64,000 bases of DNA from Macrostomum lignano. Lineage: Eukaryota. Below the pieces are notes generated by a model. It searched no databases. It saw nothing but the letters and a program-made list of their open reading frames with translations, and was not told the origin of the DNA. A program made the translations under genes and the position numbers. Positions within the stretch are counted from its first letter, which is position 1, and the number at the start of each line of letters is the position of its first letter. The DNA is taken from the NCBI GenBank assembly GCA_002269645.1, contig NIVC01001586.1, positions 18,076 to 82,075 of the forward strand, in the 5' to 3' direction. Shown piece by piece: positions 14,701 to 63,577 of this stretch.

Positions 14701-15254
14701 TGAGAATTTCCCACCGAGGTTTTCCCGCAGGGTTTTTACAGTCGGAATTTCAAGTCAAATCCAATTGGATTTTAAATCTAGTCTAGTCTAGTCTAGTCTA
14801 GTCTAGTCTAGTCTAGTCTAGTCTAGTCTAGTCTAGTCTAGTCTAGTCTAGTCTAGTCTAGATTAGTTGGTTAGTTCAAATTTAGTCCAGCACTGTCTAT
14901 AGACAGGATTTGACTTGAAATTCCGACTGTAAAAACCCTGCGGGAGATTCTCGTGCTCCCAAATTTATTAATACCTTTAATAATAATACGAGCGTACTTA
15001 ATAACGCCAGTTCCCCTGAACCCCCCCCCCCAGCACGGATAGATACGCAGGCACACGCTCACACAGGGTGTACTTTCTCAGTTACTCAAAGAGGTTAAAG
15101 TAGTAACTTCATCATCATAATTTGACTTTATTGATTCATCAAATTATTCATTAATGAGCTAATATGGCTTACCTTAAAACTAAAATGCCACCTTCAATCA
15201 GTAGCACCGTTAAATGGAATAAATTGATTAGCTTTGACGTCAAGAGTGACAAAT
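11703..15254 (-). CDS. Probable multi-exon gene of unknown function (partial)
   Basis: Phase-consistent chain 15254-15173, 14586-14524, 13956-13922, 13862-13795, 13426-13412 (15-nt micro-exon), possibly two more exons in ~13280-13035, then 12991-12804 and 11904-~11703. Reads DLSLLTSKLINLFHLTVLLIEGGILVLSMDQRGVNHLASILRQPPSVIRFAVKASRELNENLPNTLTRTAYIDGASNLFRTYQPTAAS...DTAATFDVAKSMITCDCPC...DWVHRKAWHC...WIKDALVNLKLETADFLRQQ...RFALYEYIDNCFNLWRDLAFFDP. No family recognised. Confidence 0.45.
12190..12390 (+). mobile_element. Older, 5'-truncated SINE copy
   Basis: Aligns by eye with 12566-12760 (GTGTAC.TGCCT.ACGA ... GGGCCGCTGT ... TGCGCCAGGGTGCA). Confidence 0.65.
12406..12778 (+). mobile_element. 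Full-length tRNA-derived SINE with 15-bp target-site duplication
   Basis: A box TAGCCCAGCGG at 12415-12425, B-box-like GGCTCGATTCC at 12458-12468, A-rich tail; ATGATAGATGGCTGA duplicated at 12391-12405 and 12779-12793. Confidence 0.85.
14723..14960. mobile_element. MITE-like element: perfect 40-bp inverted repeats around an (AGTCT)n microsatellite
   Basis: 14723-14762 is the exact reverse complement of 14906-14945; microsatellite at ~14776-14861; terminal ATTCTCGTGCTCCC is also found at 36830-36843. Confidence 0.7.
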
Positions 15255-15500
15255 CTGCTCACAATTCCAATGCACCTCCCAACCCATGGACAGGCTGCGA
15301 TGCACAGAACGGCTAGTGGACATTCCGTCCCCTGCGCCTGCGATTGGTCGAGGGCTGCAAAATCACCGGCAGGACTCGAAGCTCCGCCCGACCCTCTCCG
15401 CGCCTCGTCCATCTCTATATATGAACCGGCAGCTGGCGAACTCCTTCAGCCACTTCCCTTCCCGACTCGACTGGCCACCGGACAACAAGAGGCAACAGCG

Positions 15501-17470
15501 ATGAACTCCGCCCAGGCTGCCGAATCGCTGGCCGCGATCTGCAACGGCACCGAGGCGATGGCCGCCTGCATCGAGGAGGCAATCTACAGCGTCACGGTCG
15601 AGACCAAGCTGTCCGAGAGCTTCTACCAGGCTGCCGCAGCCGGCTACATCGCGGTTCTGCTGTGCGCGGTGCTGGCCAACAGCCTCATGCTGTACGCCAT
15701 CCTGTCAACCTGGCGCGAGAGCCGGGCATCGAATTATCGCTGCTTCTATTTGAATTTGATCGTCTGCGACCTGCTGTCGGCGCTGCTGATCCTGCCGGCT
15801 AGCGGCCGCGACCAGATCGACGACCGCTGGCTGTTGGGCGAGGCCGGCTGCAAGGCGGTGCACGCGCTCAGCGTCTGCCTCATGTGCAGCAGCGTGCTGA
15901 CCCTCACCGGCGTCAGCTGGCTGCGCTGCCTCGGCGCCGGCCGGCTGACCTTCAACTGGATTGACAGGCGGCGCAGCCTCGGCCGCGAGCTGGCCGCCAT
16001 CGGTGCCATCTGGCTGCTGGCCGGCCTGGCCGCCTTGCCCGCTGGCGCGGTGTCCGAGCTGCAGGAGCAGTACGACGGCATCTCCGGCCACCTCGCGGAC
16101 AAACTGGACCGGCCAATCAGCTGGCCGGTGTGCCGAGAAAACTGGGGCAACCAGTCGGCGACAGAGGCCGACGCGGAGGGGCAGCGGCAGTTCAACGCCA
16201 GCTTCTGGTGAGCTCAGGCTGTTGCGCAACTTAAGCTCAAATTCAGATTGAGTTCGAACTTTTGCCCGCTGCAGAGAACTGGGGACATCAGAGTGCTGAA
16301 GTAGCAAAACTGTAGGCGGGCTGCGGCAGAGCACTAAGAGGGTAGGGACAGAGGGTAGTACAGAGGGTAGGGGCAGAGGGTAGCGACAGAGGGTAGGGAC
16401 AGAGGGTAGGGACAGAGGGTAGCGACAGAGGGTTAGGGATAGAGGGTAGGGACAGAGGGTAGGGACAGAGGGTAGGGACAGAGGGTTAGAGACAGAGGGT
16501 GGGACAGAGAGTAGGGACAGAGGGTAGGGACAGAGGGTAGGGACAGAGGGTGGGACAGAGGGTCGGAACAGAGGGTTAGAGACAGAGGGTGGGACAGAGA
16601 GTAGGGACAGAGGGTAGGGACAGAGGGTGGGACAGAGGGTAGGGACAGAGGTAGGGACAGAGCACAAAGGCAGACGCTGAGCATACCCATTAACCCACGG
16701 CCTGCAGGTACGGCCTGGCCATCCTATGCTTGGCCTTCCTCCTGCCGCTGCTCAGCCTGGCTGCCGCCTATTGCCGCATCTGCCGCGTCATCTACCTGTC
16801 CAACCGCATTCTGAACGCGCATCGTCGCTGGCAGGAGATGGTCAGCGCTGGCTACCGCGGTGCTGCGGACACGACCCTCGTACGGCTCAGCAGCCTGCAG
16901 CAGCGCCAGCAGCAGCAACAGCAGCAACAACAACAGAAGCAGCAGCAGCGCCAGCAGCAGCGGCGGCACCAGGCCACTCCGCCGCTGCCGCCATCCACCT
17001 GCAATGCCATCAGCCAGCGTCGCCGGCTGGCAACCTCTCGCCGAATGTTCCTCCTAGCCGTAGCCCTAGTGGTGATTTTCGCCGTCACCTGGCTGCCAAT
17101 CCAGTGCTTTCAGCTCATCCGGGCCCGCCCGGACTCCAGGGTGTGGAACGCTGAACTGTCGCACAAGTTGGCCTTCGTATTCCACCTGCTGGCGCTGTCG
17201 AACTGCCTCGTGAACCCCTGCTTCCTGGTGGCCACGCATTCGCCATACAGGCGCCGGCTTCGCCGTCTGGTTCGCAACTTCTACAGGCGCCGACGCCGGC
17301 ACGGCTGCTGCGTCTGTTGCCTGCTCTGCTTGTGCAACATCTTCGGCTCCTGTTGCGACTGTTGCTGCTGTGGCGGTCGCGACGGCAGAGACGGCTGCAA
17401 CACGTGCTGGCTGTGCCCGTTCCGGAAGCGAGCCGGGGACCGGCAGTTCGAGCTGAACGATCTCAGTTGA
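15501..17470 (+). CDS. Rhodopsin-family (class A) GPCR, NPY/NPF-type neuropeptide-receptor-like, 489 aa
   Basis: Exons 15501-16207 and 16708-17470 (phase-2 intron, TG|GTGAGC...CTGCAG|G), 1470 nt total. TM1 AN, TM2 NLIVCD, ECL1 WLLGEAGCK, TM4 W, ECL2 Cys, TM6 FAVTWLP, TM7 HLLALSNCLVNP. Confidence 0.92.
16335..16660 (+). repeat. 13-bp G-rich minisatellite (AGAGGGTAGGGAC)n in the GPCR intron
   Basis: About 24 units with two GGG runs each. Confidence 0.93.
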
Positions 17471-24550: not shown

Positions 24551-27500
24551 TGTTGTGGGTTGATGGCTTTGCCATAGACATTTTTGTTACGCGACTGCGT
24601 TGATGAATTGAACCATGCTATTGAGTTATGAAATAAATGATAGACGCGTCAGAGGTCAACAGACCGCTAGACTGACAATTGCCAAAGGCTAAAGCCAAAA
24701 GCACAACAGTGGCGTCGGCAAGCATAGGCTACGAAAATGCCTGGAAGTACGCCAGCATCGCCAACTAAAGGAATTGGTAAAACGGTTTCGAGCGACAAAG
24801 CACCACCGCTTGCGATCTCGTCGAAATCAGTCCAAGCGACAAAGTTGCAACAGCGACAGCGCAGAATCCAAGCGCACAAGTATCGAGAGGACAGCAAGTT
24901 GACATCGAAAAACTCGATGAAAGTTCGAACTTCCAGAGGTGGTTGGACCGATTCACACTGTGCAGCGAACTCAACGGCTGGCAGGACGACACGAAAAACA
25001 AGCTGCTGCTGATGAAGCTCAGCACCAAGCTGTACGACGCATTGGCAGATCGAGCCGCTCCCAAGAAGCCGGGAGAAAAGAGCTTCGATGAACTGACCAA
25101 ACTACTGGCCAGCATCCTGGAACCAAAGACGTTCGTCATGGCTGAGAGATTCAATTTCCAGCATATCACTGGCACGGCATCAATGAGCATTCGTGAGTAT
25201 GCACAGCAACTCTGCATGCAAGCAGACAAGTGTCAGTTTGGCCTATCCAGAGATGAGAGACTGAGAGATCAGCTCGTATTCGGTTTGAATGACAAGGTGG
25301 CCATCAGCAAGTTATTGGAACAGGACTTCAGCACCCTCACGTTTGAGACAGCTATCAACATCGCTGAGGCGCACCAGAACGTATCACAAACGCAAATACT
25401 AAAGGGTTGCACCAGTCAGCCGCAGTCTTCTGAAGTAATGAAAATTTCAGCATCGGTGGCCAGAGGCTCCCACTCTACAAGCTCCAAGTGTGGCAGATGT
25501 GGCACAATGCATGGCTCCAATGGAGGGTGTCCTGCGAAAGGAAAAACGTGCAACAAACGTGGCATGCAAAACCACTTCGCAACAGTTTGCAAAACGAAAT
25601 CAACTGGTTTTGGCAAAGGCCGAAAATCGTTCAAAAGCCCGTCAGCATCTGGTCAATTTAGGCGAGCTGCAGTGTGGCCAAGGACCACAAGCTTTGTAGA
25701 TGCAAGCGAAGCTGAACAGGAGGATTGTTTTCATATTCGACATCCCGTTGATAGCTACACCGTGCCTGTTAGGCTCAGACACACGAGCGGGTCGATGCTT
25801 AGCGTGAACGCACAAATCGATACTGGGGCAGGAGTTTCGGTAATGTCAAAAACGATCTGGAAACGATTGGGTTGTCCAAAGCTGACACCTACAGACACTG
25901 TTCTGACAACATACGCTGATACGCAAATGAAGGTCTTTGGAACACACGAAACTGAGTTGGAGTACAATGACGAGTTCATTCCAATCACATTCTTCATTGT
26001 GGAATCGCAGAGGAACTTTGCTCTGGTTGGCCGAGACAAGCTCAATTTCACGCTAAACGCTGTAGACAACAACTGCACATCGGCAACCCAGTCATGCGAA
26101 TTTCCACCAGTAACTCTTAAGATCAAGGAAGGAACCACTCCAATTCATTGCAAACCCAGGCCGCTACCCTTCGCACTCAGACAGGGAGTCAAGGATGAAA
26201 TCGATCGGTTGCTTGAAGAAGACACCATCAAGCCCGTCAAGTTCAGTGAATGGGCCTCACCAATTGTCGTGGTCAAGAAACCTTCTGGAAAGCTCAGACT
26301 TTGCGTCGACTACAAGGTGACAATCAATTCTCATCTTATCAACGATTCATATCCGATGCCTGCACCTGACGAAGTGATTGCAACTGCTGCTGGCAGCCGG
26401 ATATACACTCGTCTAGACCTCAGCTTATCACTAAGAAAGTGAAAGCTTAACACTTTCACTTAAAAGCTTATCACCAGAAAGCTTATCACCAGATCCCACT
26501 AGATGAAGCTTCCAAAGAGCTGACAGTAATGTCAACACCATTTGGGATGTTCGCTTTCAACAAGCTTCCGTTCGGAGTGAAAACAGCACCTGCGATCTTC
26601 CAGCGGTACATTAGCCAAGTCCTACAAGGAATTCCTGGCGTCATTGCCTACGTAGACGACATATTGATATGCGGCAAAGGCGTAGAACAATTGGCAGTTC
26701 GCGAGACGGAAGTATTGCATCGACTAAACCAGCAAGGATTGAAGATCAACACGGCGAAAAGTGAATTCCGCAAGACTTCGATCAAGTTTCTAGGCTACTT
26801 ATTGGAAGGAGATCAGCTCAAGCCGGACCCAGCCAAAGTGAAGGCAATCCAGGACATGACACCACCGCAGAACGTTGGCGAGCTTGAATCCTTCCTGGGT
26901 CTCGTAAATTTTAGCGGCAAGTTCATCAGAAACCTAGCTGCACTGACCAAGCCTCTCAATCGACTAAGAAAGAAAAATGAGGACTTCGTGTGGACAAAGG
27001 AGTGTCAAATAGCATTTGACAAAATCAAGGTCACTCTCTCTGATCAATCGAGTCTTCAAATATTTGATCCGGAGAAGCCCATTGAACTGGAATGCGACAG
27101 TTCTCAGCGAGCTCTGGGCGGAGTGTTGACACAAAGCGGTCAAGTCGTGCTGTACATGAGCAAGACTCTGTCTGACGCCGAAACAAAATATTCGCAAATA
27201 GAGCGTGAAGGCCTGGCACTGGTTTGGTGCATTCAAAGATGCCATCGGTTCTTGGATGGCCGGAGGTTCACACTGATAACTGATCACCGGCCCCTCACAT
27301 ACATATTCGCGCCAGACAAACAGCTGCCCACCAGAGTTTCAGCTCGACTACAACGATGGGCAATCATACTAGCTGCTTATGACTTTGACATACAGTGTCG
27401 ACCATCAAAGCTAATGCTGTCGGATGCGCTATCTCGACTGGTGCCCGCTAAGCCGAATGCACAGACAGCATCGATCGGACTCCTCGAAGCTGACAACCCG

Positions 27501-28918
27501 GGAGTAATTCAGCTGGATCGCATTGCACACGCAACCAGAGAGGACCCGGAGTTCAGATGCCTGGGCGCAGCCATAATTAACAATAATCTATTTGACGACC
27601 CACACCTACTCAGCTACTCAAAGGTTCAAGATGAGCTAACTGTCAATGATGGAATTATTTACAGAATGAACAGAATTGTATTGCCTCGTGTCCTGAGAGA
27701 AAGTGCCCTGGCAGCTGTACACTCAACGCACCTTGGGGTGGAAAAGTCAAAGTCGATTTTGAGGGAACAGTTCTGGTGGCCACAGATGGACCGTGACATC
27801 GCTGACTACATTGGACGATGCAACGTGTGCAACCCGTACAAGCCCAGAAATAAGAACTTTCGGCACTCGTGGCCAGAACCTGACAACCCCTGGGAGCGAG
27901 TGCACATTGATTTTGCCGGTCCGATAGAGGGCAAGTACCTACTCATCATTGTGGATGCGCACTCGAGCTACCCGGAAGTCTTCATCACGAGCGACATGAA
28001 GGCCGACACAGTCATTTCCAGACTTAGAAGATTGTTCTCACAACAGGGGGTGCCCAAGTGTCTCGTGTCAGACAACGGCCCAGTTTTGTGAGCGAAGCGG
28101 TGACCGGCTGGCTCACCCAGATTGGCTGTTCGCACATCACAACGCCCGCCTACCATCCACAGAGCAACGGCATTGCAGAGCGAATGGTGCGAACCGTCAA
28201 AGAGACAATCAAGACCAATGGTTTATCCCAAAGAAGTATTGACAGATTTCTACTGTTCTACAGAGCTGCCAAAGGGAAGCAGCAAGCATCACCGTCCGAG
28301 TTGTTGAACGGCAGACAAATAAGACTCCCCATCTCGGAGAGCAGCACTCAGTCCAAGTGGATCCCAGGAGAATCACTCATCTACCGTGCATCGAGTTCTC
28401 ATGAGCCACGAACTGTGAGATTCGCCAAAATGCTTGGCAGCAACACAGCAGTCGTCACCACAGAGACTGGACGAAATCTAAAGACCCACCTCGATCAACT
28501 ACGAATCGGTGAGGTACCTGAGGCTCACGGAACTACGGAAATGGGGGATTCCAAGCCCGGTGGCAGCAGTCCAAGTGACGACGGCCAACAGACGCGTCCG
28601 TCATCGACAGACACTGAGATACTACCGGGAACAGAACAAGCTGAGAGAGCACAACAGCAACAGACTGAGGTTGGAGTGACGCGAACGCTTGGCCAAGAAA
28701 ACTAGAATTTTTTATCGCACCTGAGTGATAATTGTACACCTACCTATAGAAGAGGGAGGGTGTTGTGGGTTGATGGCTTTGCCAAAGACATTTTTGTTAC
28801 GCGACTGCGTTGATGAATTGAACCATGCTATTGAGTTATGGAATAAATGATAGACGCGTCAGAGGTCAACAGACCGCTAGACTGACAATTTCCAAAGGCT
28901 AAAGCCAAAAGCACAACA
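24551..28918 (+). mobile_element. Full-length Ty3/Gypsy LTR retrotransposon (4368 bp), disabled
   Basis: LTRs 24551-24708 and 28761-28918 (158 bp, TGTTGTG...CACAACA, 3 differences seen); GTAGT duplicated at 24546-24550 and 28919-28923; PBS-like GTGGCGTCGG after the 5' LTR; PPT AGAAGAGGGAGGG; domain order gag-PR-RT-RH-IN. Confidence 0.97.
24737..28705 (+). pseudogene. gag-pol of the Gypsy element, broken into three or four frames
   Basis: CCHC knuckle CGRCGTMH...C, protease IDTGA, RT LRLCVDY and YVDD, RNase H ECDSS and YSQIEREGLA, integrase H..HLG...C..C, HIDFAGP, SDNG, PQSNGIAER. Insertion with stop at ~26423-26478, frameshift at ~28082, no in-frame gag ATG. Confidence 0.93.
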
Positions 28919-31343: not shown

Positions 31344-34300
31344 CTACTCATCATACTCATTCACAAGTACACTAGTGGAGCCTTCAGGAGTCGATACATT
31401 CGCCAGCAGGTCGTACTCATCCTCAACTACTCCAAAGTAAGTTGCAGGAGTCGATGCACTCGCCAGCAGGTCGTACTCATCCTCAACTACTCCAATGTGA
31501 GTTGTAGGAGTCGATGCACTCGCCAGCAGGTCGTACTCATCCTCAACTACTCCAACGTGAGTTGCAGGAGTCGATACATTCGCCAGCAGGTCGTACTCAT
31601 CCTCAACTACTCCAATGTGAGTTGTAGGAGTCGATGCACTCGCCAGCAGGTCGTACTCATCCTCAACTACTCCAAAGTAAGTTGCAGGAGTCGATGCACT
31701 CGCCAGCAGGTCGTACTCATCCTCAACTACTCCAACGTGAGTTGCAGGATTCGATGCACTCGCCAGCAGGTCGTACTCATTCTCAACTACTCCAACGTGA
31801 GTTGCAGGAGTCGATGCACTCGCCAGCACGTCGTACTCATTCTCAACTACTCCAACGTGAGTTGCAGGAGTCGATGCACTCGCCAGCACGTCGTACTCAT
31901 TCTCAACTACTCCGGAGTGTGGCTTGACAATTGGAGGAGTACCACTCCCGCGGTGGCATGAATGCCCGTCAACAACCGCTCTCGGGGATTTCTGGGACAG
32001 TTTGGACAGAGCAATGAATTTGCTGTTACATATGCCATCCGCATCAGCTTTGACAGGTAGCTCTTTCGCTGCATTGCGACGACAGCAGAGCAATCTAAAC
32101 GAGACGCAGAGACCAGAAAAAACCAACAAGCTGCCCAGAATGAAGCTCGTTAGAAACTGCGGCAAGCCAAAACCTCCCGGATTGTCGTCTTCTGCAATGG
32201 TTTCGGCATTCAAATACATGCCTAATGTGTTAAATAAAAGTGGTCACCCAGTCAGTCAGTGGTCAACCATGTAGATGACCTGTTTGTACAATATACTTCG
32301 TACAAGCTTAGAGACTAAATGTATAGACTCGTTCAGACCATATTCAAATGAGACTGCAGTTTTGGAATGATCATGCGGCTTATACATATTTTTCGTGGCT
32401 ATGCAAACCAGGAGTGACAATGTTCGTTTGATTCATCATGATTCACGAAGACCATTCTCACCTTGCGATGGCCTGCGAAGTGTCGAACTAACAGTGTCCA
32501 GGATGAGCCCTGACTGATTCACCAGACACTGGACGGACGCCGAATCAGCCCACTCCTTCGGAACAATCAGCGAAAACGTGCTGCTTGTGTTACTCGACTG
32601 AAAGTGGTGCAGTTTTATATTTCTTATTAGTATGAACGCAAAGATAGCTATTTGAATTTTTAGCAAACGAGCCATCCTATACTTGAAGTAGATTATCCTG
32701 CAATTGTTCTTTTCGACAAAGAGAATTTTCAACTACTTAAGCTATAGAATGGATCCCGAAGCCGACTAAAACAACTAGAATGGGACCTAGATGAGATGTC
32801 TTGGCGTTTCTAGTCGATTGTTCTGATAAGTTATCAATTGCAGCTTTGCTTCTATAGCTTAATTTGTCATCCTCTTTGTAGTGATCCGCTAGTTTGGTGT
32901 TAGGCGTCGCACTATTGTCAGCGGCTTCCCTCGCCCTCGCCCTCGCCCTAAGTCGCTGTCTGCCGCTGGTCAGCCTCCCTCCCTTTTTTTCTGCCTGTTC
33001 TCTGTCGCCCCCCACCTCTTCTCTGGGCTCTTGCTTGCAGCCACGAGCTTCTCTGCTGTGGCCTGCTCTGCGTTTCGTTCCTGTCCTGAGGTCAAGCTGG
33101 CGGCCTGTTTCCCTTGTCAGGTGAGCAAGTCACTTGACAAGTCTTGTTTTCTCGAAGTCCTAAAGTGCAGTAGACATGTTTACTGTACTTGTTGGTCCAT
33201 GTTTACAGGAGGAATCACGTGCTTCAGGGCCCTTGTCTTCTCTAAGGTAATAGGTGACTCATGTTTCTAAAAATAGATAATGAGTCATGCGGCCCTGTGC
33301 ACTTTACCCGCAGACCCTGCCTTCTCTAAGGCACGAGGTCCGGCGCACACTGGCGCAGCGGGGATTCCCCTATAAATACGTGCCCCTCACCCTTGGTTCA
33401 GTCAAGGAGTGCTTCTTTAGTCTAGTTTTCCAGACTTCGTTCAGTTGCCCATTTAACCATTTGGAAGCCAAAGGCCTGCACTGCAGGCCATACCGAAACG
33501 GTCCAGAAACCCAGAGATTGAAAAATGTCTATGGCATCAAAAACCATCTCCCAATCACTAAAGCAAGTGCCCAGTATGGCCTGCTGTGCAGGCCATGACT
33601 GATTTAAAGACGTCCATTATGCATTTCCATTGTGTTTTCACTCAAATGGGAAATGTTAAAGGGGAAATAAAGCGTGGATGAATTAGCATGGATCTGGACA
33701 GAGACCAGGATTTCCGGGACATTGGCTGCAGCAAAATACTGTCTTCTTAGCTGGAACGTCAGGTTTCAAATTCGGAATCGTTTGCTTGGGCGAGTCTGGG
33801 CTTCCGTTGCTGGGAGTCGTCCGTGTATATGTGGTATCCTTCGCCCAGCACTTCGCGACTAAGCTCAGCAACAACTCTCGCTCTCTTCCTCGCCATTTTC
33901 TGCACTCTCCTGCTGGAACTCCCTGACTGCCAACCACATTCGCTCATTAGTCCATGTGACAAGACTGTGGTGAGAAACTCTTCAGTCAGGATCAATTTCT
34001 GGATCCATGCCTTCCGACTCCGTTTCTGACTCAAAAACCGTCGAGTCATTGCTTGATAAAGCGTCTTCCGAATCGGAATCGAGTCCCAGTCTACGCAAGG
34101 CGTCACTTTTAGCTGTCCTATTCGGCCGAGTAAAAGCCATTTGTGGGTAGGAAGGTTTGAACAGGAGCTAGCTGAAAAACTATGTGATATACTTTACTTC
34201 TGGGCTTCTAGGGTGTGCACTCGATTCAGCAAAAAAGACAAATTTGTCTATGGACTGCTCTGCAGGCCTTTGGGCTTTTAAGCCATCTTACAGAACCAAG

Positions 34301-37300
34301 CTTGGGCGCGAAGTGGTTAAGCTATCTGTAATTGGCCTGACTAAACTTAGACGCCCAAGCCTAAGGGAGGCTAACACTGCCTTCTCAGCCACCCGCTGAG
34401 CCCGGCGGGATCTGCTGAACAGGACCAGGACGCCTTGTTCATTAATCTGCAGATCTGCACGCTGTGCTGAGTTCGTTGACTTGTTTATTTCGTTCCGACG
34501 GGAAGCTCACCTCACCGAAGGCCGAGACATGAAGGAACTGGTGGCAGCACTACCGACGCTACTAAGAGCTAATAAGAAAGCTTCCGAGAGAAGAGGCTCG
34601 AGACTTAAGGTAAAGCTTAAGTGACTAAATCGGGAAGCAAAAAGCGATCTACTTCGTTGGTGGCAGCGGTGGGATTCAAAGACCTACCATGCCACCTTGA
34701 GACAACCCTAAGTACTTCATCTTTTATCAATAGTGCACTTTCAGACTTGAGGAAGGGTAGCTGTGGTACACTGTCGGACCTGAGGAAGGGTAGCTGTGGT
34801 GCACTGTCGGACCTGAGGGAGGGTAGCTGTGGTACACTGTCGGACCTGAGGAAGGGTAGCTGTGGTGCACTGTCGGACCTGAGGGAGGGTAGCTGTGGTG
34901 CGCTGTCGGATCTGAGGAAGGGTAGCTGTGGTGCACTGTCGGACCTGAGGAAGGGTAGCTGTGGTGCGCTATCGGACCTGAGGGAGGGTAGCTGTGGTGC
35001 ACTGTCGGACCTGAGGGAGGGTAGCTGTGGTGCGCTATCGGACCTGAGGGAGGGTAGCTGTGGTGCACTGTCGGACCTGAGGGAGGGTAGCTGTGGTGCA
35101 CTGTCGGACCTGAGGGAGGGTAGCTGTGGTGCACTGTCGGACCTGAGGGAGGGTAGCTGTGGTGCACTGTCGGACCTGAGGGAGGGTAGCTGTGGTGCAC
35201 TGTCGGACCTGAGGGAGGGTAGCTGTGGTGCACTGTCGGACCTGAGGGAGGGTAGCTGTGGTGCACTGTCGGACCTGAGGGAGGGTGGCGCACACCTCAA
35301 AAGACAAATTAGTCGCTTACAGACACAGATGGCAGACGACTCCGCCCATGCCTATGCTTTAGGTGGCAGGTGTGGGTTGTAGCCAAACAACTTCTGCTCC
35401 GAAGAGTTGGAATCGTGCTCACAGTGAATGTGAATGTGAAGCCAGGCCGCCAATCAGTTTCTGGCGGCTGATTGAACAGCGTTTTGCACGGATCTGCGGG
35501 AGATTGTGGAGACGGTACTTGCACTATCTAGTGGCTATATCTGGACTCGAACCTGTGTCCTTCGGTGCAAGAGAGCAATGCAGGGCACTCGCCCTCTATA
35601 AAAAACTGAACGATACACAAAAGGCTGAGTGCTATGCAGTTTCACAGTGAGCGCGCACAAATCAACTTCGGTATGCTCTCGGTTATTTGCGACTCCTCCG
35701 AAGTTCTCTCCAGAGAGTAGGCGCACGAAATGCTCCCGCCGACCATCGACTCGTTGACTCGTAGGCTGAACGTGCTGCTGCGAAATTCCAGTCCGTCACC
35801 CACGTCAGTCAACTGCGGGATTCAGTGAATTGAATGTATTGAAGTGCACTTAAGTGTGGTTCATTGTCTTGGGTTGCAATTGGAGTCGACTGGAATGCAT
35901 TGGAGTGTGTTGCAGTGCAGCCCAAACTACCTCTTCTGCACCCCAACGAACCACAAAGAGCTGAGGATAAAGTCCCATCCCACTCAACATAAAAACCCCC
36001 GACTCGAACATTGTCATGCTTGGTCTCCAAGATCAGCTTCGGCGAGCCAGCTCGATCAATCAGCAGGCAGTGGTGCAGCGGCCTTGGAAACGCCGGCTCG
36101 GTACTGAAGGTCACCAGCGCTTCGGTCCCCACGACCCACACGGATCCGCCCATGTCCAGATGGACAGCTTTCGGCTTTGCTGCGGAGTATTTTGAGTAAA
36201 AATTATTTACTTTTTACTTATGCTTCTGCTGCCCACAATGACTCTTAAGACGCATAAAGGATCATGAGCAAACAAATCGCTCAAGAAGAATTCTGTACTC
36301 GCAAATCGTGTAATTTTTACTGCAGAATACATTAGCTAGATAGGGCTTCGGAGTTTCCTTGACATTAAAAAGATGTCAAGCTTCAGAGAAACTATATTTG
36401 TTAATTTTATAGAGTAGTAGAACAGACAGTGTCAACGAGATTTGCCCGCAATGCTTTTTTCCTGCAGCGCATTTTTTCACGTCGCAGATTTTGTCTGCAC
36501 TGCCTCCCCAATGCTTAGTAAGTCTTATTAAAGAGATTTGGGGAACAAAGCGACATGGAATATGCATGAATTAATAGATGCATGTATATACAGAACTGAG
36601 TGCCTACAAGAAAAATATAAATTTGATATGCAGTTACTATCAAAGCGTTTTGATCGGATAAATCTCTTTATTAAGACTTAATAAGCATTAGGGGGCATGC
36701 AAAATATAGCTGTCACGTGACTAAATGCGCCGCAAGAAAAAAAGCATTTCGGGCAAATCTCGGCGGGAAAAATCTCGGCGAGCAATTCACTCGCGGGCAA
36801 ATTCCACTGCGGGCAAAGCTCGGCGGGCAATTCTCGTGCTCCCGAACAGAAGACTCAGAAATTCACCTAAAACTCGTTGTTCTAGAACTGGTTGTTAAAT
36901 AATGAAGCAGTGAAGCACAGCTACCCTCCCTCACGTCCGACATTGCACCACTCCCACAGCTACAATCCCTCAGGTCCGACAGTGCACCACAGCTACCCTT
37001 CCTCAGGTCCGACAGTGCACCACAGCTACCCTTCCTCAGGTCCGACAGTGCACCACAGCTACCCTTCCTCAGGTCCGACAGTGCACCACAGCTACCCTTC
37101 CTCAGGTCTGACAGTGCACCACAGCTACCCTTCCTCAGGTCCGACAGTGCACCACAGCTACCCTTCCTCAGGTCCGACAGTGCACCACAGCTACCCTTCC
37201 TCAGGTCGACAGCGCACTACAGCTACCCTCCCTCAGGTCGACAGCGCACTACAGCTACCCTACTTAACGTAGGAAAATTAACGATTTGAAAGTGCAGCGA

Positions 37301-40300
37301 ACTTCTTTTTTGCTTGATTTTCTATTGTAGAAGCACGAATGCATGTACAGAAGAACCGGGCTGCCTACAGATGAACCCGATCGTCCTATTGAATCGGCCA
37401 CTGGCTCCGCTGGCGCACCGGAAGCTGCAGTCCAATTGACTGTTGCGAAATCGGCCGTTGATCGTCAGCAGGTAGGCCGCCGCACTGCCTGCGGCTTCCT
37501 AAAAATATTGTAAAAGTCATTCACGTGTACCACTGAAAACTGCTTTTTTAGGAAGCCAGTTCCTCTTTTCTCGTTCTGTTTACTGTTTTATAGCTTTTTT
37601 TTCTTTTCGTGCCATCCTAAGGGAGCGCTCCTCCTTTCTGGAGACCTCCCTTTGTGCGCCAGTCACGTGGTGGCCGTACTCCCTCTACATGCATCTCGTA
37701 CCAGTTACGCTCGTAGGTTGGTGCCGCTTGATAAACTCCTGCAAACAGCCTTCGACAAGCAAACATCCTGCAAGCAAACATCCTGCAAACAAACATCCTG
37801 CAAACAAGCATCCTGCAAGCAAACATCCTGCAAACAAACATACTGCAAGCAAACATCCTGCAAGCAAACATCCTGCAAACAAACATCCTGCAAGCAAACA
37901 TCCTGCAAGCAAACATACTGCAAACAAACATCCTGCAAGCAAACTTCCAGCAAAGAAGCATCCTGCAAACAAACATCCTGCAAACAAGCATCCTGAAAGC
38001 AAACATCCTGCAAGCAAACATCCTGCAAACAAACATCCTGCAAGCAAACATCCTGCAAACAAACATCCTGCAAGCAAACATCCTGCAAGCAAACATCCTG
38101 CAAGCAAACATCCTGCAAACAAACATCCTGCAAGCAAACTTCCACCAAACAAGCATCCTGCAAGCAAACATCCTGCAAGCAAACATCCTGCAAACAAGCA
38201 TCCTGCAAGCAAACATCCTGCAAGCAAACATCCTGCAAGCAAACATCCTGCAAGCAAACATCCTGCAAGCAAACATCCTGCAAACAAGCATCCTGCAAGC
38301 AAACATCCTGCAAGAAAACATCCTGCAAGCAAACATCCTGCAAGCAAACATACTGCAAACAAACATCCTGCAAGCAAACATCCTGCAAACAAGCATTCTG
38401 CAACCAAACATCCTGCAAGCAAACATCCTGCAAGCAAACATCCTGCAAACAAGCATCCTGCAAGCAAACATTCTGCAAACAAACATCCTGCAAGCAAACA
38501 TCCTGCAAGCAAACATCCTGCAAGCAAACATCCTGCAAGCAAACATCCTGCAAGCAAACATCCTGCAAGCAAGCATGCTGCAAGCAAACATTCTGCAAAC
38601 AAACATCCTGCAAGCAAACATCCTGCAAGCAAACATCCTGCAAGCAAACATCCTGCAAGCAAACATCCTGCAAACAAACATCCTGCAAACAAACATCCTG
38701 CAAACAAACATCCTGCAAACAAACATCCTGCAAGCAAACATCCTGCAAACAAACATCCTGCAAACAAGCATCCTGCAAGCAAACATCCTGCAAGCAAACA
38801 TCCTGCAACCAAACATCCTGCAAGCAAACATCCTGCAAACAAGCATCCTGCAAACAAGCATCCTGCAAGCAAACATCCTGCAAGCAAACATCCTGCAAAC
38901 AAACATCCTGCAAACAAGCATCCTGCAAGCAAACATCCTGCAAGCAAACATCCTGCAACCAAACATCCTGCAAGCAAACATCCTGCAAGCAAACATCCTG
39001 CAAGCAAACATCCTGCAAGCAAACATCCTGCAAACAAGCATCCTGCAAGCAAACATCCTGCAAGAAAACATCCTGCAAGCAAACATCCTGCAAGCAAACA
39101 TACTGCAAACAAACATCCTGCAAACAAACATCCTGCAAACAAGCATCCTGCAAACAAGCATCCTGCAAGCAAACATTCTGCAAACAAACATCCTGCAAGC
39201 AAACATCCTGCAAGCAAACATCCTGCAAGCAAACATTCTGCAAACAAACATCCTGCAAGCAAACATCCTGCAAGCAAACATCCTGCAAGCAAACATCCTG
39301 CAAACAAACATCCTGCAAACAAACATCCTTCAAGCAAACATCCTGCAAGCAAACATCCTGCAAGCAAACATCCTGCAAGCAAGCATGCTGCAAGCAAACA
39401 TTCTGCAAGCAAACATCCTGCAAACAAACATCCTGCAAGCAAACATCCTTTAAGCAAACATCCTGCAAACAAACATCCTGCAAACAAACATTCTGCAAAA
39501 AAACATCCTGCAAGCAAACATCCTGCAAACAAACATCCTGCAAGCAAACATCCTGCAAGCAAATATCCTGCAAGCAAACATTCTGCAAGCAAATATCCTG
39601 CAAGCAAACATCCTGCAAGCAAATATCCTGCAAGCAAACATCCTGCAAACAAGCATCCTGCAAGCAAACATTCTGCAAACAAACATCCTGAAAGCAAACA
39701 TCCTGCAAGCAAACATCCTGCAAGCAAACATCCTGCAAGCAAACGCAAGCAAACATCCTGCAAACAAGCATCCTGCAAGCAAACATCCTGCAAACAAGCA
39801 TCCTGCAAGCAAACATCCTGCAAACAAGCATCCTGCAAGCAAACATCCTGCAAACAAGCATCCTGCAAGCAAACATCCTGCAAACAAGCATCCTGCAAGC
39901 AAACATCCTGCAAACAAGCATCCTGCAAGCAAACATCCTGCAAACAAGCATCCTGCAAGCAAACATCCTGCAAACAAGCATCCTGCAAGCAAACATTCTG
40001 CAAACAAACGTCCTGCAAACAAACATCCTGCAAACAAACATTCGGCAGAAAACATCCTGCAAGCAAACATCCTGCAAACAAACATTCGGCAGAAAACATC
40101 CTGCAAACAAACATCCTGCAAACAAACATTCGGCAGAAAACATCTGGCTCTCATAAGAAACTAATAAATGTTTCGCCCCTTTTGCTGGCAAGTATGCAAC
40201 GAATTGTGAGCTTGTCCTTACTAACAAGAATATCTTAAACCGTTATTAATTTACTGCAACTCACAAACTTGAAATTGCCCACGAGTGGTTGGAGGCTGCA

Positions 40301-42830
40301 CAGCGGAGTCTTCAGAGTCTGGCAGGGCAGGCAGGCCACCAGCATGGTGCCAGGCCGAAGGCGGTCCAGGCCGACCGCTGAACAGACCGACTGGCTGCTG
40401 CGGCTGACCAGCTGAACAGCTGCATCATCTGAGAGAGAGAGAGCGCGCACACAGCGCAGTTGATTAGCGGACTCATCATCATATTCTTTTGAATTCTTTA
40501 CTCGCCCATTACTTAATATGTTTTCAATTATCACTTCGGTCCCCTGGCCATTCCACTCTCTCACTCGGTGCCATTCCCTCTTCTCTCACTCGGTGCCATT
40601 CCCTCTTCTCTCACTCGGTGCCATTCCCTCTGGTGGATACAACGGAAAGTTGTCACGCGATGACATGACCTCTTTGCAATCACTGGTAACTGGCTTACCA
40701 AAATTGATTTGTAATCCAGCGAACTCCAGCCGCTTATCAGTTTCATTCTGCACAAATCTTCTCAGAAGAATAAAGCGAGTCGGCTGCAAATATTGATTTA
40801 ATTCAAGGTTACGCATTTAGATTGATAGTTCTGAAGTTAATTTAATAGAGACACGAAAACTTCATTTTGGCGCCAAAGCTCCCAATATTTATTGATAACT
40901 AAAAAAAATAAATATGGGATCTGTGGAATGGGATCGGGATGGGACGGGGATGGACCGGGAGGGGACCTGTGGAATGGGACCTGGAGATGGAACCCTGTGG
41001 AATGGAATCGGGATGGGACCTGTGGAATGGGATCGGGATGGGACCTGTGGAATGGGATCGGGATGGGACCTGTGGAATGGGATCGGGATGGGACCTGTGG
41101 AATGGGACCGGGATGGGACCTGTGGAATGGGACCAGGAGGGGACCTGTGGAATGGGACCTGGAGATGGAACCCTGTGGAATGGGATCGGGATGGGACCTG
41201 TGGAATGGGACCTGGAGATGGAACCCTGTGGAATGGGATCGGGATGGGACCTGTGGAATGGGATCGGGATGGGACCTGTGGAATGGGACCGGGATGGGAC
41301 CTGTGGAATGGGATCGGGATTGGTCCTCTTGAGTGTATATCACACAAACGCTAAGTCAGCATTCCGAGCGTGAACTCCCAAAACTAAAGTGGCGCGTGAG
41401 ATTAGTTCAGAAAAGGGAGAATTTTCCCAATATTAGGAAGTGAATTTTTTTGCTAATAGCACGAAGGCTCAATTCCATGGACAGCAGCTGACCTTTGGGC
41501 ACACCGGGCCGCACACGAGTCCGCACTTCACCTGCTGGCGCAGCGGTCCAGAAGGCCGGGCAGCGGCGGTACGGCCGCAAGTAGAAAATTTGTCCACAGC
41601 CACAGTGGCTTTGCAGGAGCCTGACACGGGCTTTAACTGGATTGATTCCGACTGCTCATCGCTGATTAGCACCTCCAAGTTGCTTGCTCTCACCGGAGCT
41701 GCTTGTTAGGGGATATGAGATTGGAGCGAAATTATAGCAGCAGACCGGAGAGAAAACATTGGATTTCCAGGCTAATCTGACTTGACACTATATAGCTACC
41801 CTGACCCAACACCACCCTGACAACCACCCTGACACAACACCATTCTGACTCAACACCACCCTGACAACCAACCCCTGACCCAGAACAAACCGTCAGGCTG
41901 GGCGTGAACCGTCACGGACTGAAGATGAACAGCTCTGGACAGACGGAGCAGCAGCCATTGGTACCCGAATTCGTCCGGCGCGTTGCCCGAACGGAACGAC
42001 ACGGCGGTCGTGTCGGCCACGGCTCGAACCGAGGCGCTGTAGCATCGCTCCTCAAATGTGGACGACTGCCAGGCTTCGATCATGTTCAGATTTGAGTGAC
42101 TGGCACCGGCGCCTGTGCAGGATATTGACGGCGCAGAAAAGAAATGTAATACTCGTATATATGCTGCCGTATATATTTAGATAAGACAATTTTAAGATAC
42201 TATTGATTTTACGCTTTTTAGGGTGAAGTAGCCACCCATGAATCACTGGATATGGATACAGTACGGAGTTAAGCTTGTGTTCAGAGGGAGATTTGTGCGG
42301 ATTTTAGGCCAGGACATGTGGAGCTCGCACCAACATCGATCAACTTCTAATCAAAGATGAGATATATTGCCACTTAATTTGTGCTGCAGTTCATGTCACC
42401 AACACAGAGCCAAATAAAATGGTACAAAAGTACATGTAGTCCATTTCTAGCTACTTAATATAACTAGCGATCCCTATTATGGATCAAGAAATGCAACCTA
42501 CCGTTGAATAGCTGCACCAGCTGGATGCCAATAACTGCTAGCACTTGTGCATTGGCAATTAAACAGTTAAGAGAAATGCAAACCTGCAACCAAGATCTCG
42601 GCTGCATCACAATAGCGCTTAACAGAATAACTACGAAGACTTTAGGCCCAAACGCTCACGGCTAGAAGATACGGGTAATAAATAACGTTTCTATCAGAAT
42701 TTAACTTTTGTTTTAACAAACATTTTCTGCACCCGATACTGTACCAACAGCATGGTCAGCTGACTTACGCAACCAAACAGATGCGCAGGTGTGCAAGCGT
42801 CAGAAAGAGAACTTTCAAGTCAGCCCACAG
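31344..42830 (-). CDS. Type I membrane receptor: signal peptide, F-type-lectin (FTP/F5-8C)-like domain, two Ig-like domains, TM helix, nine tandem acidic YDxL motifs (~690 aa)
   Basis: Exons ?-42769, 42630-42584, 42112-41891, 41698-41532, 40783-40699, 40428-40265, 37498-37369, 36179-36010, 32597-32462, 32221-31344; all AG/GT bounded, with junction phases 2,1,1,0,1,0,1,0,1 joining into one stop-free frame. Start codon not located; domain names are motif-based inference. Confidence 0.8.
31385..31915 (-). repeat. Coding 60-bp minisatellite, 9 units, encoding GVVE(D/N)EYD(L/V)LASASTP..
   Basis: Lies in the last exon downstream of the TM segment; 20-aa period. Confidence 0.95.
33453..34281 (-). 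mobile_element. Internally deleted, non-autonomous piggyBac element
   Basis: TTAA at 33453-33456 and 34278-34281; imperfect inverted termini (AAAGGCCTGCACTGCAGGCCATA and TATGGACTGCTCTGCAGGCCTTT); acidic N-terminal fragment DSDSEDALSSNDSTVFESETE; C-terminal Cys-rich motif KKTVFCCSQCPGNPGLCPDPC. Confidence 0.65.
34741..35287 (+). repeat. 33-bp minisatellite, ~16.5 copies
   Basis: Unit CTGTCGGACCTGAGGGAGGGTAGCTGTGGTGCA. Confidence 0.96.
36436..36843. mobile_element. MITE-like palindromic element with subterminal short repeats
   Basis: 36436-36474 pairs with ~36723-36761 (about 4 mismatches); inner AAGTCTTATTAAAGAGATTT and AAATCTCTTTATTAAGACTT pair; ends in ATTCTCGTGCTCCC like 14947-14960. Confidence 0.6.
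36912..37261 (-). repeat. 33-bp minisatellite, inverted copy of the 34741-35287 array (~10 units)
   Basis: AGTGCACCACAGCTACCCTTCCTCAGGTCCGAC is the reverse complement of the GAGGAAGGG variant unit. Confidence 0.95.
37757..40145. repeat. 15-bp minisatellite (AAACATCCTGCAAGC)n, ~155 copies, intronic
   Basis: Source of the 570-850-aa KHPAS / CRMFA / LQDVC ORFs. Confidence 0.97.
40550..40630. repeat. 25-bp triple repeat next to a donor site
   Basis: TCACTCGGTG at 40561, 40586 and 40611. Confidence 0.85.
40915..41322. repeat. ~25-bp G-rich minisatellite (GGGATGGGACCTGTGGAATGGGATC)
   Basis: Direct periodicity with a 35-bp variant unit. Confidence 0.93.
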
Positions 42831-43439
42831 GCTTGCAGATTGTATAAGATAATCAAGCTGGTAGCAATTGCTTTAGCTGTGCATGCCTGGCGTGTGAAAG
42901 TGGCCAAGACAAGATTTACTCATGGTTTATAGTTTATCACTAGGAGCCGAAAACGCACTTGGAAGATAGTAAAGCTATCAGTAACACGACACTTTAGCCA
43001 GTCTATGTTCGAGGCAGAAAAAGGTAAACCACCCACATCAATTAGAATTATATTTACCAAGACAAAATCATCAACTGTAAGTCATTCTTTGCAAGACAAT
43101 ATAGTTATTCAAGTATTTAAAAAATCTTGCTAACTCGTCAGATCAGGCCTAAATATCGATCTCATACGATACTCTGTGTATGGATAAAATCAATTATCAA
43201 CAATGATGTCTAATTAAGTTATATTGACTGAGCAAAGTGGACAGTCTGGCCATACCAAGAAGCGAATGACATTTGGGAGATGAAATCAGATTGCATATTA
43301 GTCTGCTTGTCATTAATTAACCGTAGGGAATTGTAGATATTGAATAAAGTTATTAATACAGCAATTAAATAACCTTACTATCGTTAGCGAGTGCTTAATA
43401 ACTTAATTAGAGTGGAGCTCTGTTCTCGGGACGCTAAAA

Positions 43440-63031: not shown

Positions 63032-63577
63032 CTGGCAAGTCAGTGCAGTAGACTGGGGCTGTTAAGCAGAATGCCGCACAAGTAAATCATGCAAATGGGG
63101 ATGTCAAGTTAAGCAACGGGATGGATCCCGAAGTAAAGCTCCAAACCAAATCGGTAGCAAAAAGCTCTACATCTAGACAATGCATTACGAAAGCCTGTTA
63201 CGAAATTACCTTATTTTTTCAGAGTTAAATTGGTTTGCAGGGAAGAAAATAGGCAATAGCGCTTATTCATGCTCGCTAGGATCCCTACTCTACTCAGAAT
63301 AGGTAATCCTAGGTAAACGAGACTTCCCGCTCTTTAATTAGCGCTGCATAGAGATAGACTGAGCAATTAATTTTCTAAAAAGAAAATATAATTAAATTAT
63401 TGGGTTTGGATAATTGGGTTAAAGCAAAAAATAAGAAATCACTCTCTCTATTCAGTGACCAATAAAACTGAAAGGCTTAATGAATGCAAAATCGGAAGCA
63501 GATTTTTCGATGCATTTCCTTATTGATTTTGATTCTAAAAACTGAGTGCAGTTGATAAAGGGCCAGACGAGTAGTTT

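Follow-up and report, generated by a model that had tools for sequence, protein, structure and literature searches.

Can a receptor gene be scattered over kilobases of minisatellite and still be intact? The question is raised by the minus strand of a 64,000-nt stretch of the genome of the flatworm Macrostomum lignano (contig NIVC01001586.1, assembly GCA_002269645.1, positions 18,076 to 82,075), the whole of which we call the window and whose numbering is used for all coordinates below. A first-pass annotation had proposed that ten small exons lying among repeats encode one receptor, with an F-type-lectin-like domain, two immunoglobulin (Ig)-like domains, a transmembrane (TM) helix and nine tandem tyrosine motifs. 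Our analysis points to a real and intact gene in exons 3–10, with a predicted product that carries a galactose-binding-type jelly-roll head, a Cys-rich module, an atypical Ig-like module, a single TM helix and a repetitive, tyrosine-bearing tail. We regard the gene and its architecture as very probably real and its function, taken alone, as a tentative proposal. To the whole explanation, gene, architecture and receptor function together, we give a probability of roughly 0.6.

Little is understood of innate recognition in flatworms, among which M. lignano offers a genetically tractable model of regeneration and stem-cell biology. A lineage-specific family that joins a lectin-type jelly roll, Ig-like modules and a tyrosine tail would be a candidate for the sensing of glycans, self or microbes, and a case in which the receptor logic of 'lectin head + Ig stalk + tyrosine tail' was put together independently. 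The value of the finding is limited by a function that is predicted throughout, by a family that has already been deposited as hypothetical proteins, and by a tail that is perhaps a neutral minisatellite.

The exon chain and its support

Rebuilt base by base, the ten minus-strand exons join in consistent phases into 2142 nt, or 713 codons, without an internal stop and close with TAG, which bears out the proposed stop-free frame of at least 665 codons. All nine introns are of the GT...AG type, and every acceptor is CAG or TAG. The landmarks quoted for the chain were all recovered (VLFLTLAHLRICLVA/YSVK, AWQSSTFE, YQWLLLRL, TRFILL...LEFAGLQI, the TM helix with CCRR, and the nine 20-residue tyrosine repeats). 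Exons 3, 6, 8 and 10, which open the successive modules, are entered in phase 1, and phase 0 is found within each module pair, reproducing the 1-0-1 split described for both membrane-proximal modules. Introns of phase 1 on both sides of a module (the 1-1 rule) are a trait of metazoan mosaic extracellular proteins, and the rule holds at these four exons and likewise in the gene of a paralogue. The predicted gene spans about 11.3 kb, with nine or ten coding exons and a putative type I membrane protein of about 700 residues as its product.

Since the exons had been picked by eye for their openness, independent evidence was sought in codon usage, homology and intron positions. A codon model was trained on neighbouring genes of the window (a Dishevelled-like PDZ exon with the open stretch downstream of it on the same strand, a G protein-coupled receptor, MGAT1 and an acid phosphatase) and compared with 349 open stretches of the window that served as controls. 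Exons 3, 4, 6, 7, 8 and 9 each fall within the top 0–5% of the controls (exon 3 within the top 1%), and their pooled score is 0.176 against -0.395 +/- 0.105 for the controls. Codon usage in exons 1, 2, 5 and 10 is indistinguishable from that of the 349 controls.

Homology was detected with exon 3 alone. Its 73 residues, searched with phmmer against 1.84 billion representative sequences, retrieved five true relatives at 43–56% identity. All five come from M. lignano and are named 'hypothetical', 'Ig-like domain-containing' or with other automatic names; the 56%-identical sequence, A0A1I8JMH0, is a frame-mixed copy. Three further matches, P0121, P0122 and P0124, align by way of numerous short repeats and were discarded as spurious; P0124 proved to be a repetitive protein with 'SYxYQWLLCN' as its basic element.

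The closest structural guide is the paralogue PAA49974.1 (804 aa), which maps to contig NIVC01003746.1 of the same assembly in 13 exons. The spliced model is collinear with it from exon 3 through exon 9, and the position and phase of the introns are identical at all seven that can be aligned. Exon 5 has the length (85 nt) and phase of exon 4 of the paralogue, exon 3 has as its counterpart a 228-nt phase-1 exon, and exon 10 shares the layout and phase of the paralogue's last exon. Further support comes from UniProt entry A0A1I8JHL6 (94 aa), which is 100% identical to the window over 11 intron-encoded residues, exon 5 and exon 6, and which contains the same exon 5–6 junction as the first-pass chain; no contig is recorded for this entry. 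Codon usage, alignment to paralogues, conserved introns and this entry together sustain the proposal of a type I membrane protein gene among minisatellites.

The complete protein is far less visible to searches. The whole spliced sequence found no match in Pfam, the PDB or a word-indexed search of 5.8 billion proteins (E<=1, among 8000 candidates, a number that is probably a ceiling), and domain-wise Pfam searches returned only spurious DUF matches. Neither the exon-10 open reading frame (ORF), a 698-aa model described below, nor a variant started with methionine has an exact entry in a collection of 15 billion proteins. The 64-kb window contains no paralogue of the gene, and an Rfam scan of it gave no match. 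The gene is held in protein databases as fragments only, because kilobase-long minisatellites separate its exons; exon-level homology searching can recover genes split in this way.

Could the open stretches instead have lined up by chance, or could the locus be a duplicate that is decaying in a polyploid genome? The selection of exons for openness would favour such a reading, as would the hidden polyploidy of M. lignano (PMC10468722), the frame-jumbled version of a near-identical locus in A0A1I8JMH0 and the absence of a full-length entry among the 15 billion proteins. Yet neither a stop nor a frameshift interrupts any of the eight exons, their codon usage is gene-like, a paralogue shares their intron positions and phases, and residues invariant in the family are retained. 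For exons 3–10 this explanation is close to refuted, and overall we consider it highly improbable; these exons appear to form a real, intact gene.

The 5' end is the part of the ten-exon chain that drew no support. Exons 1 and 2 had been read as a hydrophobic leader, yet exon 1 has no in-frame ATG and is immediately preceded by TAA, and neither exon has homology support or a counterpart in the paralogue gene, which starts with a single 79-nt exon carrying the start codon and signal peptide, ending in phase 1 and standing directly before the first lectin-like exon. Homology and introns uphold exons 3–10 only. We therefore searched the 4 kb that reach to the MGAT1 stop for stop-free exons that start with ATG and end in phase 1. 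The most hydrophobic candidate, 42607-42502, overlaps exon 2 in a different frame and, spliced straight to the exon that begins at 42112, gives a complete ORF of 698 codons with the layout of the paralogue. Its donor, GTAGGT, departs from the species motif GT[GA]AG (PMC8629364). On balance we lean, by a little, towards a start in this single exon over the two-exon leader.

A third route to a start codon is offered by trans-splicing. Trans-splicing affects 30% of the genes of M. lignano, and the last three bases of its spliced leader are ATG (PMC8629364), so a leader-donated start is possible, and exon 1, which would need either this or a further exon upstream, contains an in-frame TACCAG/CTT at which it might act. 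The acceptor motif in the species is [TC]TNCAG (PMC8629364); because TACCAG/CTT does not fit it, we treat such a start as unsupported. Splicing of exon 1 directly to exon 3 was rejected, as the phases misfit and the other frame is neither hydrophobic nor started by ATG. The coordinates of the chain are collected in Table 1.

Table 1. Exons and other features of the predicted receptor gene (window positions)
Feature	Position	Strand	Remarks
Exon 1 of the first-pass annotation (leader ...KVLFLTLAHLRICLVA)	42769..42872	-	donor GC/GTAAGT
Exon 2 of the first-pass annotation (YSVKRYCDAAEILVAG)	42584..42630	-	weak donor CAG/GTTTGC
Alternative first coding exon, 106 nt, MQPRSWLQVCISLNCLIANAQVLAVIGIQLVQLFN(G)	42502..42607	-	phase 1 out, donor ACG/GTAGGT
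Exon 3, lectin-like domain 1/3 (AWQSST...YQWLLLRL...SVTVHAQPD)	41891..42112	-	phase 1 in; phmmer homologues
Exon 4, lectin-like domain 2/3 (APVRASNLEVLISD...CGRT...RQQ)	41532..41698	-	phase 1 in; collinear paralogue alignment
Exon 5, lectin-like domain 3/3 (PTRFILLRRFVQNETDKRLEFAGLQINF), 85 nt	40699..40783	-	phase 0 in; within A0A1I8JHL6
Exon 6, Cys-rich module, half 1 (DDAAVQ...ACLPCQ...NFKF)	40265..40428	-	phase 1 in; conserved LPC, C
Exon 7, Cys-rich module, half 2 (EAAGS...LDCSFRCAS...TIGFI)	37369..37498	-	phase 0 in, phase 1 out
Exon 8, putative Ig-like C2-type module, half 1 (KPKAVHL...EALVTFSTEPAFPRPLHHCLLI...)	35989..36179	-	phase 1 in; paralogue modules, PDB profile
Exon 9, putative Ig-like module, half 2 (...STFSLRVNESMVGGSISCAYS...PKLI)	35659..35812	-	phase 0 in, phase 1 out
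Exon 10, juxtamembrane stretch, TM helix, CCRR stop-transfer, cytoplasmic tail, TAG	31344..32221	-	phase 1 in
Transmembrane helix FLTSFILGSLLVFSGLCVSFRLLCC	32082..32156	-	Kyte-Doolittle 19-mer peak ~2.0
Nine 20-aa repeats GVVE[DN]EYD[LV]LASASTPATH and degenerate tenth VLVNEYDE	31347..31916	-	60-bp tandem repeat
33-bp minisatellite, intron 9	34733..35286	.	inverted relative to intron 7 array
33-bp minisatellite, intron 7	36908..37261	.	with intron 9 array brackets Ig-like exons

Folds of the predicted ectodomain

The N-terminal domain (about 170 aa, exons 3–5) shares with its family the invariant elements W-Q-S-S, C, F, P-D, G.QWLL..L and V.V, followed by R-A...E..L, C, C-G and L-L-R..V....D-K...F; exon 4 is collinear with P0128 (PAA49974.1), P0123 and P0127 and retains their invariant RA..E..L, C and CG. 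When a profile of the family was searched against 177,635 PDB sequences, the top match was the striped bass F-type lectin FBP32 (E=1.7e-4), both of whose F-type lectin domains (FTLDs) were matched, and the pneumococcal fucolectin module 2J1R came fifth (E=1.1). Jelly-roll families other than F-type lectins were absent from this search.

Structure prediction agrees at the level of the fold. An AlphaFold2 model was made of the N-terminal domain of PAA49974.1, and not of the window protein itself, from an eight-row alignment that included exons 3–5 of the window as rows (predicted local distance difference test, pLDDT, 65; predicted template modelling score, pTM, 0.69). Its top Foldseek matches in the PDB are galactose-binding-type jelly rolls throughout: CBM32, SUN (SUN2), the GnT-IVa lectin domain, lectinolysin, AAA 1K12, FBP32, muskelin and XRCC1, with E values of 4e-5 to 1e-3 and TM scores of 0.4–0.6 for matches including 1K12, 3CQO, 3LEK and 2J1R. 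The same fold occurs in CBM32, discoidin and SUN, and does not by itself prove FTLD membership.

Curated models give a cooler answer. The FTP/F5_F8 match expected of the spliced protein did not appear: the Pfam models concerned (FTP/F5_F8_type_C, and Ig) lie below threshold on the receptor protein, with none at E<=10. Two paralogues gave sub-threshold matches to F5_F8_type_C (PF00754) and F5_F8_type_C_2 (PF22633), at E ~0.01 and 16–17 bits against cutoffs of about 28. The domain thus described as F-type-lectin-like keeps its place by fold and superfamily and falls short of the Pfam threshold. We read it as a probable galactose-binding-type jelly roll, closest in sequence, among solved structures, to F-type lectins; this indicates remote FTLD homology rather than membership by curated thresholds.

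The residues aligned to the fucose-binding site differ as well. The fucose-binding triad of FTLDs is His52/Arg79/Arg86, in the motif H-X26-R-X-D-X4-R/K (PMC5712786). At the positions assigned from the HMMER alignment to FBP32, paralogues have H/R/R with the spacing H-X30-R-X5-R (e.g. YGRAAEPSRA, with a conserved YFH near the His), whereas the window protein has R/Q/R, with two of the three residues substituted: His is replaced by Arg in SFRSG, and in HAQPDAPVRA the first Arg has become Gln and the second is kept. The Asp at +2 and the vicinal Cys-Cys of FTLDs occur in none of the family members, and the FTLD Ca-site is missing. Given the R/Q/R triad, sugar binding by this copy is doubtful.

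These changes bear on an alternative in which the protein is an adhesion or self-recognition molecule whose jelly-roll head has lost sugar binding and binds a protein ligand. Protein-binding uses of the fold exist in SUN, muskelin, discoidin and XRCC1-N, Foldseek ranks SUN2, muskelin and XRCC1 among the carbohydrate binders, and both the triad replacements, at positions where the paralogues keep H/R/R, and the lack of the Ca-site and vicinal Cys-Cys would suit it. The only jelly-roll matches at sequence level in the PDB are nevertheless F-type lectins, and the family overall retains basic residues at the triad-aligned positions; we consider this alternative rather unlikely.

The two membrane-proximal modules had both been called Ig-like, which holds for one of them. 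The exon 8–9 module was aligned with nine sister modules of the paralogues, and the ten-module profile gave 103 PDB matches at E<=10, the best 60 of which all belong to the Ig superfamily (IgSF). The top match is the C2 domain of nectin-4 (E=0.0024), and B7-H3, antibody constant domains, titin, SIRP-alpha, CD22 and Kit are also found. Single modules match Ig-like models with marginal scores; the Pfam C2-set_2 model reaches 21.0 bits, exactly its cutoff, on a sister module of P0127, and UniProt labels three paralogues 'Ig-like domain-containing'. At the position of the strand-B Cys stands F or V (ALVTFS), which removes one partner of the canonical B–F disulfide; the strand-C Trp position is an invariant Cys preceded by His (HHCLL), and the strand-F Cys is kept (SISCAY). 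The module is probably an atypical Ig-like domain of C2 type.

No Ig signal was obtained from the exon 6–7 module, which is about 100 aa long and carries a conserved Cys-rich pattern (LPC, C and L.C...C, of which LPC and C are shared with P0128 and P0133). Its profile has zero PDB matches at E<=10 and no match in Pfam, and hhalign gives only 3% probability against the Ig-like module profile. The two have in common only their size and the 1-0-1 exon phases.

The 33-bp arrays of introns 7 and 9 are inverted relative to each other, with arms of up to 254 nt that are 94–96% complementary, and the two exons that they flank are exactly those of the Ig-like module, 345 nt in all, in frame and of phase 1-1. 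If the arrays paired within the pre-mRNA, this module could be skipped or back-spliced more readily.

The tyrosine tail and its possible outputs

The protein has only two hydrophobic segments, the leader and FLTSFILGSLLVFSGLCVSFRLLCC, the latter followed by RR, and its three NxS/T sites all lie in the ectodomain, a distribution that fits type I topology. Beyond the membrane extends a cytoplasmic tail of about 250 aa, the last 190 or so of which are a 60-bp tandem repeat (Tandem Repeats Finder: period 60, 8.8 copies, 95% identity). The nine tandem tyrosine motifs reported earlier are present as E[DN]EYD[LV]L, followed by a terminal NEYDE; seven of the nine units read VEDEYDLL and the first two read NEYDVL.

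Comparison of the units gives no sign of selection. Among 27 differences of units from the consensus none is synonymous, and they are distributed 16/9/2 over the three codon positions, with the third positions least variable; variants are shared between units in a higher-order pattern. For these reasons we consider the array to be young or homogenised, with no footprint of purifying selection and no evidence that selection maintains it. In the degenerate last copy, VLVNEYDE, two synonymous changes leave Y and D intact, which hints slightly that an ancestral EYD motif mattered.

The tail array may, then, have no function of its own: it may be a young coding minisatellite, or variable number tandem repeat, that arose by slippage from one C-terminal NEYD-type motif and has been tolerated, in which case its copy number probably differs between lines. 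Slippage is the default origin because the genome is so rich in minisatellites. Tandem repeats make up 27.5% of the window, and the introns of the same gene hold arrays of 15 bp (160 copies), 25 bp and, twice, 33 bp. The period and identity of the tail repeat, the pattern of its differences and the two plus-strand frames that are likewise open across it fit this account. Set against it, the array is in frame and closed by a proper stop, the older terminal copy preserves E-Y-D by synonymous changes, and expansion would multiply a plausible motif whatever its origin. We regard functionlessness as possible, on balance doubtful; since it concerns origin and selection, it is compatible with the receptor reading.

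The 15-bp-unit array lies in intron 6 (37756-40144), the greater part of which it takes up, extending over 2.4 kb with about 160 copies at 90% matches. Several frames on both strands are open across it and give pseudo-ORFs of 800 aa.

The motifs fit no classical immunoreceptor class. The immunoreceptor tyrosine-based activation motif (ITAM, YxxL/I-x6-8-YxxL/I) is not present, as successive tyrosines stand 20 residues apart, with 16 residues between a YxxL and the next Tyr; nor are the corresponding inhibitory (ITIM, [SIVL]xYxx[ILV]) and switch (ITSM, TxYxx[VI]) motifs, as every one of the nine units has D or N at position -2. The hemITAM, DEDxYxxL, is found in CLEC-2 and Dectin-1. VEDEYDLL resembles it in its acidic cluster and YxxL, without the spacer residue and in a type I rather than a type II receptor, and the likeness is one of pattern only. 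A YxxL preceded by acidic residues is a plausible substrate of Src/Syk-type kinases. Multi-tyrosine scaffolds such as the p130Cas substrate domain (15 YxxP), the YDxV triplet of nephrin and the ITAM array of CD3-zeta likewise have closely spaced, acid-preceded tyrosines for multivalent SH2 docking, and the Y-D-x-hydrophobic core is like the Nck-binding YDxV; the window copies differ in being 95% identical in DNA, in lying exactly 20 aa apart and in lacking ITAM spacing.

Taken together, the order of domains (signal-type leader, jelly-roll head, Cys-rich module, Ig-like C2-type module, TM helix and cytoplasmic tail) suggests a cell-surface recognition receptor. Its head would bind as its ligand a glycan or, given that two of the three triad positions have changed in this copy, possibly a protein, and the two membrane-proximal modules would serve as a stalk. 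The acidic YxxL array would provide a multivalent tyrosine-based output in one of two ways: Src/Syk-type kinases may phosphorylate it and create docking sites for SH2 proteins, or it may function in sorting, its YxxPhi and acidic di-leucine signals driving uptake.

The second of these outputs, taken further, gives an endocytic or scavenger-type lectin receptor, in which the tail motifs are sorting signals and nine copies drive constitutive uptake. YDLL fits YxxPhi, the signal bound by AP-2 mu2, and DEYDLL fits the acidic di-leucine pattern [DE]xxxL[LI], so that the seven VEDEYDLL units match both; a lectin-like head with a tyrosine and di-leucine tail is seen in endocytic lectins too, DC-SIGN among them. 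NEYDVL, in the first two units, matches YxxPhi only, however; sorting signals usually occur once or twice rather than nine times, and the paralogue tail resembles ITIM/ITSM signalling and not sorting. As PAA49974.1 ends with VVYAQV and TEYTEI, tyrosine-based signalling is the more likely currency of the family, and a purely endocytic role is on the unlikely side. The same tail hints at family members with different outputs.

Several points weigh against the receptor reading as a whole. The ligand, the phosphorylation and the partners are all predicted; exon 10, which encodes the anchor and tail, has unremarkable codon usage, and with more than a quarter of the window in tandem repeats its array may be one more minisatellite, one whose 27 differences give no sign of maintenance. 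The single spliced sequence and the Cys-rich module both return nothing from the PDB, the Pfam models stay below threshold, and the triad is two-thirds replaced. At the 5' end, the original first exon has no start codon and the donor of its replacement is atypical.

Relatives, known systems and neighbouring genes

The paralogues comprise BOX15_Mlig012130g1 and Mlig034318g1,3,4 (PAA49974.1 and others) and the UniProt entries A0A1I8GPA9, A0A1I8HM06, A0A1I8J6H5 and A0A1I8HXW3. At about 30% identity overall, they share with the window protein the N-terminal domain (WQSS, PD..G.QWLL..L, RA..E..L, LLR..V....DK...F), the Cys-rich module, Ig-like modules and the positions and phases of the introns. 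A TM helix and a Tyr-bearing tail are present as well in PAA49974.1, which alone among the members is full-length. It differs in having four membrane-proximal modules instead of two, H/R/R in place of R/Q/R at the triad-aligned positions, and a non-repetitive tail with ITIM-like and ITSM-like ends instead of a nine-fold EYDLL array. In that tail (residues ~750-804; NIVC01003746.1 15509-15966), VVYAQV is followed about 30 residues later by TEYTEI, an order of Siglec/PD-1 type.

A0A1I8JMH0 (P0125, 218 aa) is pieced together from exons 3, 4 and 6 in three reading frames, with intron read-through that takes in the 25-bp repeat. It comes from a near-identical locus, either in an indel-ridden older assembly or as a decaying homeologous copy.

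The family seems small, is found so far only in M. lignano and consists of uncharacterised members. The first-pass annotation knew the domain combination from no described family; its architecture is already deposited in hypothetical proteins and is unusual, not unique, though we found none of them described in the literature searched. Nor did any publication there link F-type lectins or ITIM-type receptors to Macrostomum.

F-type lectins (AAA 1K12, FBP32 3CQO, lectinolysin, S. pneumoniae SP2159 and the membrane mosaic Furrowed of Drosophila) have in common with the N-terminal domain the jelly-roll fold, the 'A.QSS' start, a W..(V/L)DL-type strand, an 'R.....R..G.E(I/V).(I/L)' strand and the C-terminal strand (F/Y)(I/V).(I/L)......L...E(V/I). 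The window family differs in reaching none of the curated thresholds, in lacking the vicinal Cys-Cys and in the spacing of the triad. FTLDs combine with TM segments and other modules (PMC5712786). The partners named in reviews are CTLD, pentraxin, CCP, FA58C and TM, not Ig-like modules with tyrosine-motif tails (PMC5712786, PMC12221842).

A purely functional analogy is with the Siglecs and CD33-related lectin-IgSF immunoreceptors, which likewise present a distal head of sugar-binding type, an Ig C2-type stalk, one TM helix and a tyrosine tail; the ITIM-then-ITSM order of Siglecs and PD-1 is mimicked by the paralogue. There is no homology: their head is a V-set Ig domain with a sialic-acid arginine in place of a jelly roll, and the window motifs are neither ITIM nor ITSM. 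Mollusc FREPs and VIgLs, which are IgSF domains joined to fibrinogen, C-type lectin or galectin domains (Dheilly et al. 2015, cited in PMC11999971), and Hydractinia Alr are also lineage-specific, combine Ig-like with lectin-type domains or bear tyrosine motifs, and act in non-self or allorecognition. Neither group is homologous to the window family; FREPs and VIgLs are secreted, with Ig domains N-terminal and the lectin domain C-terminal, and Alr has no lectin domain.

A more speculative extension, which we consider distinctly improbable, is a flatworm-specific immunoreceptor system convergent with Siglecs, with a head derived from F-type lectins, an IgSF stalk, opposite outputs according to member, and module skipping. 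Were it true, inhibition would fall to the PAA49974.1 clade, with its ITIM and ITSM, and the window gene, with its nine-fold acidic YxxL array, would supply a high-gain arm, activating or phagocytic, with a head diverged towards a different ligand; isoforms could also arise if the inverted minisatellites on either side of the Ig-module exons caused the module to be skipped.

The receptor gene shares the window with several other coding elements. On the same strand, 3.3 kb upstream, lies a large exon of MGAT1 (GnT-I, PF03071; 46147-46932, minus strand), whose best database match, an MGAT1 of M. lignano, is only 57% identical; it may be a second, divergent copy or a local copy missing from protein databases. 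A Ty3/gypsy-type pol region (24943-28705, plus strand) encodes aspartyl protease, reverse transcriptase, RNase H and the integrase zinc finger and core; being split over three ORFs, it is probably inactive. The PDZ-domain exon read as Dishevelled-like (1960-6156, plus strand) is interrupted by long proline-rich repeats open in several frames, and a second open stretch at 5704-6156 has no Pfam match. A rhodopsin-family G protein-coupled receptor (15234-17470, plus strand) is carried by two large exons, with a poly-Q/poly-A insert in the region of the third intracellular loop. At the far end, exons of a histidine acid phosphatase (His_Phos_2) lie at 60992-61714 and 62620-63039 on the minus strand; the last of them ends in a TM helix and resembles membrane-bound acid phosphatases of lysosomal or prostatic type.

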